A stretch of DNA of 64,000 bases from Octopus sinensis (lineage: Eukaryota), in NCBI RefSeq assembly GCF_006345805.1, contig NC_043006.1:56110001-56174000 (forward strand), in the 5' to 3' direction. This document shows positions 898-50,507 of the stretch, piece after piece (position 1 is the stretch's first letter; each line of letters starts with the position of its first letter). The position numbers were made by a program, and so were the translations under genes. The notes below the pieces were generated by a model, which did not search any database, was not told the DNA's origin, and saw nothing but the letters and a program-made list of their open reading frames with translations.

Positions 898-1019
898 TAC
901 CAAGTGGATCGCAAAATATTTGGAATTTCCAAAGAAGAATACTAACCACGTTCACCTCTGTTTTCTTTTCATTGATGGTGTATTGGAACTTTTTGCTACT
1001 TCAATTTATTATGATCTGA
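898..1019 (+). CDS. Terminal coding exon of an upstream cholinesterase-like paralog (copy A), GPI-signal-like C-terminus
   Basis: Acceptor ttttcag at 891-897; phase-1 reading (V)PSGSQNIWNFQRRILTTFTSVFFSLMVYWNFLLLQFIMI*; homologous to 23455-23558 and 50419-50507; AATAAA at 1053-1058. Confidence 0.75.
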
Positions 1020-1020
1020 A

Positions 1021-1090
1021 TACAGGGCTCGGAAAAACTGAAAGACCGAAGCAATAAATATATGTATCTGAGAGAGGGTTATGTTGAGAG
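1021..1090 (+). mobile_element. Mariner transposase C-terminal remnant in the 3' UTR of copy A
   Basis: Translates QGSEKLKDRSNKYMYLREGYVE, matching the mariner C-terminus pattern KL..RW.KC...G.YVE; same remnant at 23598-23741. Confidence 0.55.
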
Positions 1091-1231
1091 TAAGAGAGAA
1101 GAGAGAAAGTGAGAAGAGAGAGAAAGCATATGTATAATATATATATATATATATATAATATATATATATATATATATATATATATATATATTTATATACA
1201 TATACACAGAATATATATAAATACATACATA

Positions 1232-1331
1232 NNNNNNNNNNNNNNNNNNNNNNNNNNNNNNNNNNNNNNNNNNNNNNNNNNNNNNNNNNNNNNNNNNNNN
1301 NNNNNNNNNNNNNNNNNNNNNNNNNNNNNNN
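1232..1331. other. Assembly gap (100 N)
   Basis: Run of N. Confidence 1.
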
Positions 1332-4300
1332 TCGCACAACCAACTAAAATCATAGCGGCGACCCTGAAAAGCCATGGCTTTATGAGGACGTTGGCGCAAG
1401 TAGAGAGGAAGAAAGAGAAGTCGAAAGGGCCTACACTCTCATTGCACACACACATGGCTTTGCTAAGGCCAAGTCCTCAAGGTGGACAAGACAAAGAGAG
1501 AGAGATGGAACAGGAAACACCAACCACAGAGTGTCAAAAATGACACGCCCACTGCCACAGTCGAAGAAGGCAAGCAGGGCAAACAACAGATAGGCGGCGA
1601 TGGGGAAACGGAGATAACCACCCGGATTAAATACCTATGCAGAAAGGAACCAGTGGACAACCGTCCAACGGAGGAGAGAAAACAAGAGGAACTGAGGACA
1701 AGAAACCTCGATAACATGCAAATTCTTCGGAATGGAACCTGCTGGCATGGAGAAACAGGGGAAGGATGCAGGTTCGCTCATCCAATGCCCCTATGGAAAT
1801 TGCATCAAACCCATTCGAGACCAAATGCCTTAACCAAAACCCAAGACCGAAACCAAACAGAACAAATACAAGCTGCCCCAGAAATATGCAGACATAGTGC
1901 GTATGCCCCAACAAGGAGAAGGCGCACATTTGCAGAGGAATGCAGACGGCGGCAGCAGAACAAAGAAATTTTGTGGAAATAGCAGAGAAAATTGTGGGAC
2001 AACTGGCCTGGATACATCGTCCTTCAGAGCCAGGGGCACTCACAACAGCACTCAAGACCACCACAATCAAGGGACCCAGGGTGGGCCACCGCTGACACCA
2101 GCCCAGGTGCCACACCGTCAGCCTTTATTGACACCCCCAAATATCTCACCAGTGCTTCTGCTGAATGTCAGAGGTCTGGTGAAAAACCCCCTAATATGAG
2201 TAAATTCCTTACCTTAGGGACTTTAAGCACAAGCAACCATGCAATATGCATAGCGCTGACTGAAACGCACCTGTCAAGCAGTATAGCAGATGCAGAAATA
2301 CACGTACCAAAGTATACTGTTTTTCGGTCAGACAGGAAGGAAAGAACTCATGGTGGGGTTGCCCTGTACGTCCGTGAAGATGTCACAACCCCATATACTG
2401 TTGACACACTCAAACTCAGTCTGTGACCACTGATAGTACACGAAACAACCGAAAATAGTAATATTGTCACATATCGGCCACCAGACACCCTAGTCATGAA
2501 GGAGTGTTTGAAGATAGCCTCAGAAGAATAGAAGCAGTCCTGGACAAACTGGACCAGGGTAACACCATTCTACTGCTGGGAGATTTTAACCTTCCGAAAG
2601 TCAAATGGCCAGATGGCCATCTCCTCCCTGGAATGACATCACTTGAACAGAGACAGACAGAGTCCTTGTTGGCTCTCACACGCAAGTTTTTCATGGAGCA
2701 AGCAATGCTTCGGCCAACAAGAGGTGAGAATGTCTTGGACCTCTGTTCACAAGCAACCCGATGCTCATCCACAACATAATGGTAACACCAACAATTCTCT
2801 CAGATCACAACTTAGTAGAGGTTGATATATGGTATGAGAGAGTTAGTTGAGACGCAGCCATTAGAAATACCACAGGTCTATCCAGTCTAAACTTCCATAA
2901 GGCAAACTGGAAGAAGATAAACGAAGAGATCCGAAAACATGACTGGAGTGACTTCATCACCACACAAGACACCAACAACATTTCCAACATTTCAGACAAC
3001 AATACAGAACATATGCCATAAGTTTGTCCCGGAGAAAAAAGCCAGCGGGCCATAGGAACGTTATTCCCAGAGACAGGAAAATACTTATGAGGCGAAGAGC
3101 TAAGCTCTCGAAGCAACTGAATGCACGGCAGAGAAACAATGAGGGACTCCACCTGAAACTTTTTGAAACGGAAACTGCACTCAAACTTTCCTATGAGAAG
3201 AGAGGGCAGAGAGAGAAGCCAGGGCCATAGAGAATATTAAAACAAACCCTAAAGACTTCTTTAAATTTGCGAAAGAAACCACCTCGGTACACTGCAAGAT
3301 TGGCCCACTCTTGATAAAAAGGGCTCTCTAACTGAGGACCCCCAGGGATAAGTGAAATACTAAAGGAAATATAAAAGTGTGTTCACATCCCCTCTGGGGC
3401 ACATGCAAATCACAAACCCAGAAGTTTTCTTTGATGCCACAACACTCCAAAAAAAAACCAACAACCATCGACCACATAGACAACAGAGAGGGATGTAATA
3501 TCTGCCATAGAAGAAATGAGAATAAACTCAGCTGCTGGACCAGATGGATTCCCAGCAGTCCTCCTAAAACATGCAGGCATGCCCTAGCGGGACCACTGAA
3601 GAAGCTCTTCAGTGGTTCCTTGGCTAACGGTAACTGCCCAGGGCGCTAAAAGAAGGCACCATATGCCCTATCCACAAAGGAGGGAGTAGAGCAGAGGCCA
3701 AAAACTACAGGCCAGTCTCCCTGACGTCACACATAAGTAAGGTCATGGAAAGAATCATCAGAAAAACTGATCACGTTCCTCGAGAAACTAACCGTCTCAC
3801 TGACAACAGCATGGCTTTCGCCCAGGAAGAAGCTGCCTTACGCAGCTGTTACAACACTACGACTGGGTACTGAAACAACTACTGATCGCTCACAGGTGGA
3901 TGTGGTATATCTCGACTTTGCGAAGGCCTTTGACAAAGTCGACCACGGAGTGATATGTCACAAATTACTCAGACTCGGCATAACAGGAAAAGTAGGTGAG
4001 TGGATACATGACTTCCTGAAGGACAGAAGCCAGATGGTTGCAGCCAATGGAGCCCTCTCGGGAAAGACACCAATGGCAAGCGGGGTGCCACAGGGCACAG
4101 TCTTGGGACCCTTGCTGTTTTTGGTGGCGCTCTCTGACATGCCCTTGGTAGCACAAACAACATCCCTCACTATGACACAAAGGTAGCACAGTCAATCAAA
4201 AACCCAGCTGATGCTGACCTTTTACAACAAGATCTGGATGCCATATACAAATGGGCTGAAGACAACATGCTGGTAAATTTCAAGCCTTACAATATCAAGC

Positions 4301-48280: not shown

Positions 48281-48691
48281 TAATAATACTTTCATTTGAA
48301 AAAGTAAATGTATTGAGACACACACTGACACTTATTTTTTTCCCTGCAGCTCTTCTTGGTTAACAATTTTTTGCGAATGATTTCCAGGAGTAAAACTAGA
48401 GGGTGGACAACTTAAAGCAGCAAAATTCCCACTTCAACTACATCTAGAACAACAAATTTCTCCAATTCTCCCCAGTGACCAGCTATCCAACCCCTGTAGC
48501 AGTGTAATTAGCAGTTAAATCGTACTATGAAATCCTGTCGTTAAAATGGTACTTTGTCGATCCAGAGAGAATGGCAGGCAATTAATATAAAGGCCCCTAG
48601 TGATTTACTGCACGAAATCTTGTCTGACGGTATATTCTAGCAATACATCTATATTCATTGCCTCAAATGCTACTTTTTTTCTTTTCTCTAG

Positions 48692-48876
48692 TAATCCTAA
48701 TAATGGAGATTGTTCTGATTGCTCCAATGATCCATGGCCAAAGTTCACACTCGAAAACCAGAAATATCTTGTGATTGACAAGAAACCAAACATGAAGACC
48801 AGAGAGATTTCTACGTACAATTCATGCGACTTTTGGTCAGATCTTTTCCTTCGATTAAAGAAACGTACTTGTCCAG
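48692..48876 (+). CDS. Esterase copy D, second coding exon
   Basis: GNPNNGDCSDCSNDPWPKF..KYLVID..SCDFWSDLFLRLKKRTCP; 185 bp; canonical AG/GT. Confidence 0.92.
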
Positions 48877-50137
48877 GTAATTTTTTTATTAATCCCTCTA
48901 TCAGTTTCTGTTGACATACCGTCATATTCATTTTAAGTACTTTTTACTTTCCTTCAGAGACGAAGAATTTGGCAAATTCTACTGTAGAAATATTGTTCTG
49001 TACTTTTCAGGTGTAATCACTTAAGAGTATTAATATGCATGCGCCTACATTTTTCATTGTAATCATTTTTTTGCCAGGGAATGCAATAAAACTAATAAAT
49101 ATTCGTTTGTAATAATTTTTTGAATTATATTTCATTATTGATGATTGAATTAAAATAAAAATTTTATGAATGAAAAATGTAATTATAATTGTAAAAAATA
49201 TTAGATCTTATATCTTCACTGTATATAAAAGTTTTATATAGAAACAAAGTGCATAAAACGAACGCGCCAAGAGAGGAAGTGCAAAAATTCATTATAAAAA
49301 ATAATTTTCTATATAATAGTGAATATTTAATGTAATAATAATTTTATTAAGTAATCAAGAAATAAATGTGCTATATTCATATATAGTAAGAAGAGCTAGC
49401 AAGAAGAGGTATGAGAATATATCAACTATATGGCAAGAAGAGAATATGATCATATGAATAGTAAAGCCATAGCTAATATAAAATTTTTAAAAATGCAAAA
49501 ATAGCCATTGCATTCACTGTAAGGCAGTAGGTGCTACCTTGTTAGGACAATGTTAGTTCGTGAGTCGAAATTGATGCAAAATAAAAACAAAGCCATCAAT
49601 TCAGCTACAGTTCTTGTATAGAAAATTTGAATCGTGCTACTCTGAAAATCCAGTCATAGTATCTGAAAGCAAAAGCCTTGACAATTTACCGCAAGAATTA
49701 ATAATCTAAATTCTGCTACTCTTAATATCTAAAAATGTAAACATCATCTAATTTGGTTGAGAATGGAGTTAGTGACGAAGCTTAGAAGTGGTCGCAAGTG
49801 AGTAAATGTTGACCTTAAGAATATTATTAATACACTACCGTGTGTGAATGATATTAATTTCATATTCATTATTGGAGCCATCAGTAAATCGAAACGAGTT
49901 AATAATCAACATTTTCAATAATAATAGGTACACGAAATAGTATTACAATCTAACCTTTTATTGGTTTCATTTTATGTATAGCATCTGGGCATTCTAGAGG
50001 TATTTATATCATCTTTTTCCCTTATATAGAGTATTTGGGAGGGGGAATATTATTTAATAATGATTTGATAGGCTTGGGTGGGGGAGACACTGAAGTCCGT
50101 TCTATTGATCATGTACAGAGATATCATATATTTCATC

Positions 50138-50330
50138 TACGAGGGGGTACTGAAAGTTCCTGGCTTTAAAGGTGTCTCGAAAGGCCTTGTTGGAGGCCAA
50201 ACCTTCCGAGTTCTTTTAAAGAGTTTAAAAAACTGAAGGGCCACTGGAGAAAGTGTGTGAATCTGAGAGGGGAATATGTTGAATGAAATCATAATTGATC
50301 CTCCTGTATTTTCGTACACCAAAAAGCAAC
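50138..50330 (+). mobile_element. Internally deleted mariner remnant in the last intron of copy D
   Basis: TIR tacgagggggtactgaaag; KKLKGHWRKCVNLRGEYVE*. Confidence 0.7.
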
Positions 50331-50418
50331 GTACATACGATAATTATTACTTGTAATTTCAATATGATACAAATCAACAAAATTAATGGTGAATATTTTA
50401 TTTCATTGTATTTTTCAG

Positions 50419-50507
50419 TACCAAGTGGATCAAGGAATATTTGGACTTTCCAGGGAAGACTAATGACCTTTTTCACACCCATTCTCCTCTCTTTGATTTT
50501 GTTTTGA
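50419..50507 (+). CDS. Esterase copy D, terminal exon encoding a GPI-signal-like tail
   Basis: (V)PSGSRNIWTFQGRLMTFFTPILLSLILF*; total CDS 1752 nt = 583 aa; AATAAA at 50580-50585. Confidence 0.8.

Follow-up and report, generated by a model that had tools for sequence, protein, structure and literature searches.

A tandem array of cholinesterase-family genes with glycosylphosphatidylinositol-type tails in the genome of Octopus sinensis

Gene Content of the Locus

The stretch of DNA analysed here (the window; 64,000 nucleotides, nt) corresponds to CM016868.1:56,110,001-56,174,000 of the Octopus sinensis assembly GCA_006345805.1, with 100% identity and the N gap included, which confirmed the octopus host supposed in an earlier interpretation made from the bare letters (the sequence-only reading). 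It carries B and D, two intact three-exon genes of the cholinesterase family, together with a decayed copy, C, and an orphan last exon, here called the 'A' exon. All esterase homology in the window was located on the + strand and none on the - strand, as judged from tblastn with cephalopod cholinesterase queries and from stop-free frames. The tblastn segments covered positions 897-1016 for the orphan exon, 15919-17409, 19390-19578 and 23454-23555 for B, 25201-26178 and 29036-29197 for C, and 43279-44757, 48687-48875 and 50418-50504 for D, while no additional esterase copy was detected by tblastn in the last 13.5 kb of the window. The same-strand series proposed in the sequence-only reading (a terminal exon A, complete B and D, a dead C) was borne out nearly to the base by tblastn and by the gene models: its end points, 898 and 50507, coincide exactly with the start of the 'A' exon and the end of the D stop codon.

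The window represents the distal part of a cholinesterase-family cluster of approximately 360 kb on one O. sinensis chromosome. The conserved acetylcholinesterase (AChE) gene of this cluster occupies 55.80-55.84 Mb on the - strand, 270 kb upstream, and is followed by a paralogue at 56.000-56.012 Mb (P0137, - strand), by gene A at 56.073-56.111 Mb (+ strand) and by B, C and D, which extend up to 56.160 Mb (+ strand). The DNA of the window has 36% G+C, many microsatellites and a single gap of 100 N at 1232-1331, the remaining part (1332-64000) being gap-free.

Structure and Duplication of Genes B and D

Exon 1 of gene B (15919-17408, + strand) opens with the start codon and signal peptide, contains most of the catalytic domain and is followed by a phase 2 intron; exon 2 (19395-19579, 185 nt) completes the catalytic domain and is followed by a phase 1 intron; and exon 3 (23455-23558) encodes a tail of the glycosylphosphatidylinositol (GPI) type, VPSGSQNIWTFQGRILTTFSSIFFSLVLFWNILC, and the stop codon. 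Gene D, on the same strand, is built in the same way from exon 1 at 43279-44756, exon 2 at 48692-48876 (185 nt) and exon 3 at 50419-50507, the latter with the GPI-type tail VPSGSRNIWTFQGRLMTFFTPILLSLILF and the stop codon. The predicted products are 592 (B) and 583 (D) amino acids long. All four introns are of the GT-AG type with polypyrimidine tracts, and both genes have intron 1 in phase 2 and intron 2 in phase 1. The models agree exon for exon, at 100%, with the RefSeq proteins named 'cholinesterase 2' (B, XP_036362593.1) and 'cholinesterase 2-like' (D, XP_029641705.1).

The coding exons of B and D share 80-82% DNA identity (blastn E = 0, far beyond chance), and the similarity continues into non-coding DNA. 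Three collinear blocks upstream of B, in the promoter region, were aligned by blastn at 69-72% identity with blocks upstream of D: 13197-13591 and 14122-14272 with the distal D blocks at 32665-33070 and 33342-33481, and 15015-15429 with the proximal D block at 42229-42646, the distal and proximal parts in D being separated by about 8.7 kb of inserted retroelement sequence. Further resemblance was found in about 450 nt of intron 1 preceding exon 2 and in both flanks of the last exon. B and D thus show the same strand, the same exon-intron structure and homology reaching into flanks and introns that characterize tandem duplicates, so that both the identical exon phases and the whole-gene tandem duplication claimed in the sequence-only reading held, with C preserving the same donor and acceptor sequences. 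The window DNA is 94-99% identical to the O. vulgaris reference, and B and D are each present in that species at 97-99% identity. The ratio of nonsynonymous to synonymous substitution rates (dN/dS) was 0.41-0.52 in paralogue comparisons and 0.33 when D of O. sinensis was compared with that of O. vulgaris, indicating that the genes are under constraint and not decaying.

Pseudogene C and the Orphan 'A' Exon

Homology of the C exon 1 remnant (25208-26177, + strand) begins only at about codon 168, and C consequently has neither start codon nor signal peptide, nor Trp84 or the glycines of the oxyanion hole; it is also interrupted by in-frame stops at 25324-25326 (TAA) and 26128-26130 (TGA). The exon 2 remnant (29041-29200, + strand) has 160 nt, with a 25-nt deletion. 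No exon 3 was found in 29200-43200, where only chance matches of 14-31 nt appeared (blastn with word size 7 and E <= 1, tblastn with E <= 10). The earlier assignment of C as a pseudogene is therefore sustained by its 5' truncation, two nonsense codons, the deletion and the lack of a last exon. What C has in common with B and D is exon 1, the start of intron 1 and the exon 2 region, and the remnant still matches Pfam COesterase at E = 1.1e-52. Since the intron and the splice sites are kept, C is an unprocessed, decayed tandem duplicate. Its intron 1 (26692-28628) also holds retroelement fragments, with a weak RVT_1 match and an inverted 186-nt repeat (26780-26965 against 27853-27668).

The orphan exon at 898-1019 (+ strand) encodes VPSGSQNIWNFQRRILTTFTSVFFSLMVYWNFLLLQFIMI and a stop codon (1017-1019). 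RefSeq assigns it to the upstream 'cholinesterase 2-like' gene A, where it serves isoforms X1 and X4 as a distal alternative 3' exon; the C-termini of these isoforms (P0135 and P0133) match it at 100%. Exon 1 of gene A is located 31 kb upstream of the window, and the gene has a hydrophobic last exon of its own 3.5 kb after exon 2 (L005 25465-25569), used in isoforms X2 and X3; the 'A' exon sits 22.5 kb beyond it. The region 564-1087 around the 'A' exon is 76% identical to B 23143-23665 over 549 nt, and the encoded peptide has 76% identity to the last exon of B versus 49% to gene A's own last exon. Furthermore, a collinear remnant of a B-type intron 2 is present upstream of the 'A' exon, across a 12.5-kb insertion, while a search for exon 1 or exon 2 remnants of the copy behind it gave none. 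We read the 'A' exon as the probable last surviving piece of a lost B-like copy, spliced onto gene A by annotation. The sequence-only description of 'A' as a terminal exon only is correct for the window, but the exon is not gene A's own last one. Gene A itself (L005 15802-48150) has eight RefSeq isoforms with six different C-termini, two of them distinct hydrophobic GPI-like tails and four short, apparently soluble ends according to the RefSeq annotation, a set resembling the alternative H and soluble forms of vertebrate AChE.

Catalytic Core and Gorge Residues

Both products match Pfam PF00135 (COesterase) end to end, with E = 2.3e-141 for B and E = 1.9e-135 for D. Against solved structures, their top matches were all AChE or butyrylcholinesterase (BChE), at E = 1e-115 to 1e-121, with BChE and the AChE of Torpedo and mosquito among them, and these matches fix the fold. 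In the protein search with the largest open frame as the query, octopus cholinesterase-like proteins came out on top, and the nearest named proteins were likewise cholinesterases. In the numbering of Torpedo AChE, verified in the alignment, B and D keep the Ser200-Glu327-His440 triad, the oxyanion hole (Gly118, Gly119 and Ala201) and all six cysteines of the three disulfides. Across four octopod species, none of the intact paralogues has lost the catalytic Ser, Glu or His, the oxyanion hole or the GxSAG motif.

The gorge is different in this respect. The choline-binding Trp84 is kept in B and D and replaced by Phe in the neighbouring gene A, while the peripheral anionic site of AChE proper (EC 3.1.1.7; Tyr70, Asp72, Tyr121, Trp279 and Tyr334) was found in neither product: at these positions B reads H, S, T, F, T and D reads P, T, I, Y, L. 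B retains Glu199, Phe288, Phe290 and Phe331. D is substituted at each of these four positions and at two more: Gln199 (motif GQSAG), Asn233, Arg288, Ile290, Leu130 and Met331, with Arg/Ile at positions 288/290 of the acyl pocket. In B these two positions correspond to codons 306 and 309 (exon 1 nt 916 and 925); the O. sinensis gene has Phe/Phe there, both O. vulgaris copies Leu/Leu. An aromatic acyl pocket (Phe288 and Phe290 in Torpedo) restricts AChE proper to acetyl esters, and the two positions are known to set the preference for acetyl versus butyryl esters.

Over 16 gorge positions, the 13 derived octopod paralogues had a mean pairwise identity of 0.40 versus 0.63 for the whole protein, a value reached by only 0.05% of random column sets, whereas in the conserved AChE clade the gorge identity was 0.76 versus 0.64 for the whole protein. 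An intact core combined with a variable gorge and dN/dS values of 0.3-0.5 would fit changed substrate binding rather than decay. The term 'AChE-like' used in the sequence-only reading is therefore appropriate for the cholinesterase-family fold and the catalytic machinery; it does not hold for the gorge, where the residues defining AChE are largely replaced, most strongly in D.

Signal Peptide and C-Terminal Tail

By inspection, an N-terminal signal peptide is predicted in both products, MEGLKYILIISLLKTLVHA preceding ED in B and MEELKYILIISLFKIYAHA preceding QD in D. The tails of B and D, each on a separate exon, consist of Val-Pro-Ser-Gly-Ser, a 9-residue polar spacer and a hydrophobic end of 15-20 residues which reaches the C-terminus (mean Kyte-Doolittle 1.9-2.3) and is followed by no charged residues. 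The assessment followed the rule of thumb for GPI signals, i.e., small residues at omega, omega+1 and omega+2, a spacer and a hydrophobic end, and the form of the C-terminal exons agreed with the GPI tails named in the sequence-only reading. The conserved octopod AChE and the Sepia enzyme end in a tail of the same type, which makes this tail type ancestral. In D and A a Cys lies four residues ahead of the tail exon, presumably at the position of the inter-subunit Cys in GPI-anchored AChE dimers such as that of Torpedo; B has Ser there. The T-peptide domain PF08674 was recorded for none of the cephalopod matches listed in the protein search.

Phylogeny

A neighbour-joining tree was constructed from 50 sequences (547 columns, 200 bootstraps). 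All cephalopod sequences formed one clade (bootstrap 100) within the lophotrochozoan cholinesterase group, apart from other mollusc cholinesterases. A pair of non-octopod sequences was sister to all octopod sequences (100), one of them originating from Sepia pharaonis transcriptome runs (SRR3011300 is identified as a Sepia transcriptome run in PMC5541922); with the Sepia cuttlefish protein as the query, no further decapodiform paralogue was found in the protein database. Among the octopod sequences, the published AChE of O. vulgaris grouped tightly with its orthologues from O. sinensis and O. bimaculoides (100), four Argonauta genes formed a clade of their own (100), and five Octopus gene lineages a separate clade (72), within which A, B and D grouped together (100), with 67 for B+D. 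Orthologues of A and D were present in O. bimaculoides (86 and 82% identity, respectively), while none was found for B.

The best reading of this topology is that A, B and D belong to an Octopus-specific expansion apart from the conserved AChE and that the expansion in Argonauta was independent. Instead of pairing one to one with broadly conserved mollusc genes, A, B and D made up an Octopus-only group, in line with the lineage-specific family proposed in the sequence-only reading.

Turnover between O. sinensis and O. vulgaris

The O. vulgaris members of the family bear accessions from CAI9727860 to CAI9727868 (861 was not seen) and span 56.25-56.59 Mb. This species has two copies of B (B1 and B2) in convergent orientation. 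Comparison of window 15919-17408 with the O. vulgaris loci L004 12450-13939 and L006 56568-58057 showed the O. sinensis B to be a mosaic, with the 5' half resembling B2 and the 3' half B1. Moreover, B1 of O. vulgaris has two clustered tracts of substitutions (codons 86-99 and 140-169), and dN/dS among the B versions was 0.7-1.3, against 0.33 for D. The mosaic, the tracts and the raised dN/dS suggest gene conversion or a recombinant (fused) copy.

Another difference concerns the window segment 24463-25202, which in the O. vulgaris assembly is inverted immediately after B1 (L004 21315-22100), with no C-like sequence within 8 kb after the inverted segment. The breakpoint of this inversion falls where pseudogene C is truncated at its 5' end, and the inversion is either a true rearrangement or a difference between the assemblies. 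Taken together, the mosaic B, the inverted segment and the convergent B pair point to continuing unequal crossing-over and gene conversion, the alternative being an assembly error in one of the two species. The paralogue upstream of gene A (P0017 in O. vulgaris, P0137 in O. sinensis) is on the same strand as A in O. vulgaris and on the opposite strand in O. sinensis.

Assembly Gap and Repeated Elements

The 100-N gap is already present in the public assembly. The distance to it is 213 nt from the stop codon of the 'A' exon and 144 nt from the point where the B 3'-flank homology stops (1087), so that it interrupts no esterase reading frame. In O. vulgaris, a sequence 97% identical to window 1-1231 is followed, after 3 nt, by window 8585 onward, which makes 1232-8584 an O. 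sinensis-specific block. The order and orientation of the unique gap flanks are thereby supported, and the content of the gap does not affect the array finding.

Starting exactly at the gap, 7.3 kb of retroelement and microsatellite sequence (1332-8584), absent at this place in O. vulgaris, give RVT_1 matches at 3737-4183 (+) and 6580-7659 (-) and include open reading frame (ORF) fragments resembling the endonuclease and reverse transcriptase of long interspersed nuclear elements at 1348-5057 (+) and 6580-7659 (-). Long microsatellites of the (TA/TATG)n type are found at about 5000-6200 and 7700-8200. Between the distal and proximal upstream blocks of D there is a 522-amino-acid reverse-transcriptase ORF (34436-36689; RVT_1 at 34756-36321, E = 5e-31). 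Two related ORFs with a 'YIGET...' motif and Cys-rich stretches, at 38090-38617 (-) and 54709-55512 (+), resemble the GIY-YIG endonuclease of Penelope-like retroelements and had no Pfam match at E <= 0.01. C2H2 zinc-finger-like peptides (CxxC...HxxxH, e.g. CEKVCKSNGGLKRHFKIHK) are encoded at 37406-37532 (+) and 52266-52716 (-) and probably belong to either a dispersed repeat or a zinc-finger pseudogene. A repeat some 400 nt long, 77-86% identical and ending in (CA/TA)n, occurs three times (9479-9866, 29759-30233 and, inverted, 31666-32073) and is probably an element similar to short interspersed nuclear elements. Rfam and tRNA scans of the whole window found nothing.

Discussion

B and D are likely to be surface-anchored serine esterases with a diversified substrate range that arose by repeated tandem duplication; their GPI anchoring, catalytic competence and substrate divergence are what we infer from the sequences, while the gene structures, the duplication, the decay of C, the residue states, the placement in the tree and the cluster layout are observed directly. 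In the proposed scenario, repeated unequal crossing-over would have duplicated the whole three-exon gene together with its upstream and intronic DNA. The signal peptide would take B and D into the secretory pathway, where a GPI anchor would replace the hydrophobic C-terminal exon at the Ser-Gly-Ser site, and the enzyme on the outer cell face would then hydrolyse carboxylic esters by means of Ser200-Glu327-His440 and the oxyanion hole. What chiefly separates the paralogues from the conserved octopod AChE is the set of residues that line the active-site gorge, and they probably differ in the esters they accept. The O. sinensis allele of B, with Trp84, Glu199, Phe288 and Phe290 kept, could be an acetylcholine-type hydrolase without a peripheral site, while D, with Glu199Gln, Trp233Asn, Phe288Arg and Phe290Ile, is probably an esterase with broader or different substrates.

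Several points weigh against this interpretation. The GPI anchoring was assessed by rule-of-thumb inspection. For an enzyme, a dN/dS near 0.5 between paralogues is high, and relaxed constraint could account for part of it. The tree was built by neighbour-joining only and has weak internal nodes (67 for B+D and 72 for the Octopus-specific group), and decapodiform genomes are sparse in the protein database, which leaves 'octopod-specific' as the best reading and not as proof. No expression or enzymatic data for B or D were found, and the 90%-identity clusters of A, B and D hold genome-derived proteins only, with no transcript assemblies.

If B and D were ordinary redundant synaptic acetylcholinesterases providing an extra dose of the same enzyme, one would expect what is seen in B at Trp84, Glu199, Phe288, Phe290 and Phe331, and the AChE and BChE structures as best matches of both products and a cluster shared with the conserved AChE gene would also suit such a role. 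However, Asp72, Tyr70, Tyr121, Trp279 and Tyr334 are replaced in both, D has additionally lost Glu199, Trp233, Phe288 and Phe290, the gorge is significantly more variable than the rest of the protein in the paralogues while conserved in the AChE clade, and a distinct AChE orthologue evolves slowly (the O. sinensis and O. bimaculoides versions being 89% identical), which makes simple redundancy unlikely. It is very unlikely that the products are non-catalytic adhesion or scaffold proteins comparable to neuroligins, gliotactin and neurotactin: the lost gorge aromatics and the elevated dN/dS could fit a loss of enzymatic constraint, but the triad, the oxyanion hole and the GxSAG motif persist throughout the intact octopod paralogues, and in place of a transmembrane segment with a cytoplasmic domain a short hydrophobic tail ends the protein.

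Concerning the tail, the hydrophobic C-terminus might be retained as a membrane anchor, or be removed to yield a soluble secreted esterase, without any exchange for GPI. Soluble forms are indicated in the family by the RefSeq isoforms of gene A with short non-hydrophobic ends; against this stands the canonical layout in B and D, with small residues from omega to omega+2, a polar spacer and a hydrophobic end not followed by charged residues, and tails of this kind belong to GPI-anchored cholinesterases in Torpedo (H form), Drosophila and squid. A fate other than GPI exchange is accordingly regarded as rather improbable. An origin of the array as an assembly artefact, by uncollapsed haplotypes or a mis-join, is hardly credible, even though the window has an N gap and neither copy number nor orientation is the same in the two species' assemblies (O. 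sinensis and O. vulgaris): copies only 80-82% identical are too divergent for haplotypes, B and D recur in O. vulgaris and A and D have orthologues in O. bimaculoides, and the DNA from 1332 to the end of the window is free of gaps. Haplotype duplication or mis-assembly as the source of the copies was rejected on account of this divergence and cross-species conservation.

A more far-reaching and speculative possibility, which we consider doubtful, is that Octopus and Argonauta independently built arrays of GPI-anchored ectoenzymes tuned to esters other than acetylcholine, and not extra synaptic AChE. This would involve rapid reshaping of the gorge, with acyl-pocket residues differing even between O. 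sinensis and O. vulgaris, and the candidate substrates would be choline esters from prey or from the animal's own secretions and environmental esters at sensory, digestive and salivary epithelia. The chemotactile sense of octopus uses receptors derived from acetylcholine receptors.

Few enzymes are understood as well as the cholinesterases, of which most animals have one or a small number. From O. vulgaris a single AChE has been cloned (AHG95983.1 / A0A075D677; Fossati et al., 2014, as cited in PMC5430041). Compared to this enzyme and its O. sinensis orthologue XP_029641621.1, B and D have the same family, cluster, Ser-Gly-Ser GPI-like tail, triad and disulfides, but the octopod AChE is only 59-62% identical to them and keeps Asp72, Tyr130, Glu199, Tyr334, Trp432 and Tyr442, which are largely replaced in B and D. 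The octopod AChE also has one-to-one orthologues in O. bimaculoides and probably in Argonauta, and it is the octopod type nearest to the cuttlefish enzyme. With Torpedo californica AChE (2W6C, 1EA5), B and D share 37-40% identity across the catalytic domain, together with the triad, the oxyanion hole, the three disulfides and Trp84, and a separate last exon for the hydrophobic GPI signal is a feature in common with the vertebrate GPI-anchored H form; in contrast to Torpedo AChE, all five peripheral-site residues are replaced and B has no Cys before the tail. D resembles vertebrate BChE, a chain of which was the top structure match of both genes, in being non-aromatic at 288/290 and in lacking most peripheral-site aromatics, but it replaces Glu199 (Gln) and Trp233 (Asn), both kept in BChE; as D did not group with vertebrate BChE in the tree, the resemblance is convergent. 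The GQSAG motif is known in insect juvenile-hormone esterases, and A, C and D carry it in place of GESAG, a likeness at the level of the motif that reflects no closer relation than a shared superfamily.

Lineage-specific cholinesterase paralogues, with proposed roles in detoxification or outside the synapse, occur in other invertebrates, for instance ace-1 to ace-4 in nematodes and ChE1/ChE2 in amphioxus. Another example is Schistosoma mansoni, with three cholinesterase genes (PMC6919630). Unlike these invertebrate paralogues, the octopus copies form a contiguous tandem array beside the conserved gene, their copy number turns over between sister species, and there is a parallel expansion in Argonauta. 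The genes are already annotated in RefSeq and GenBank and their existence is not new. A literature search on octopus and cephalopod cholinesterase paralogues returned no description of the array, only work on the cloned O. vulgaris AChE and on AChE activity staining (PMC5430041), and the word 'cholinesterase' had zero occurrences in the cephalopod genome papers that the search returned.

The array offers a compact natural experiment in the evolution of esterase specificity, in which duplication, decay, gene conversion, alternative GPI or soluble tails and selective gorge remodelling around a preserved catalytic core are assembled beside a conserved AChE. For the biology of cephalopods it means at least five cholinesterase-type genes which histochemical 'AChE activity' and transcript annotations may be conflating, and it supplies candidates for non-synaptic ester clearance.

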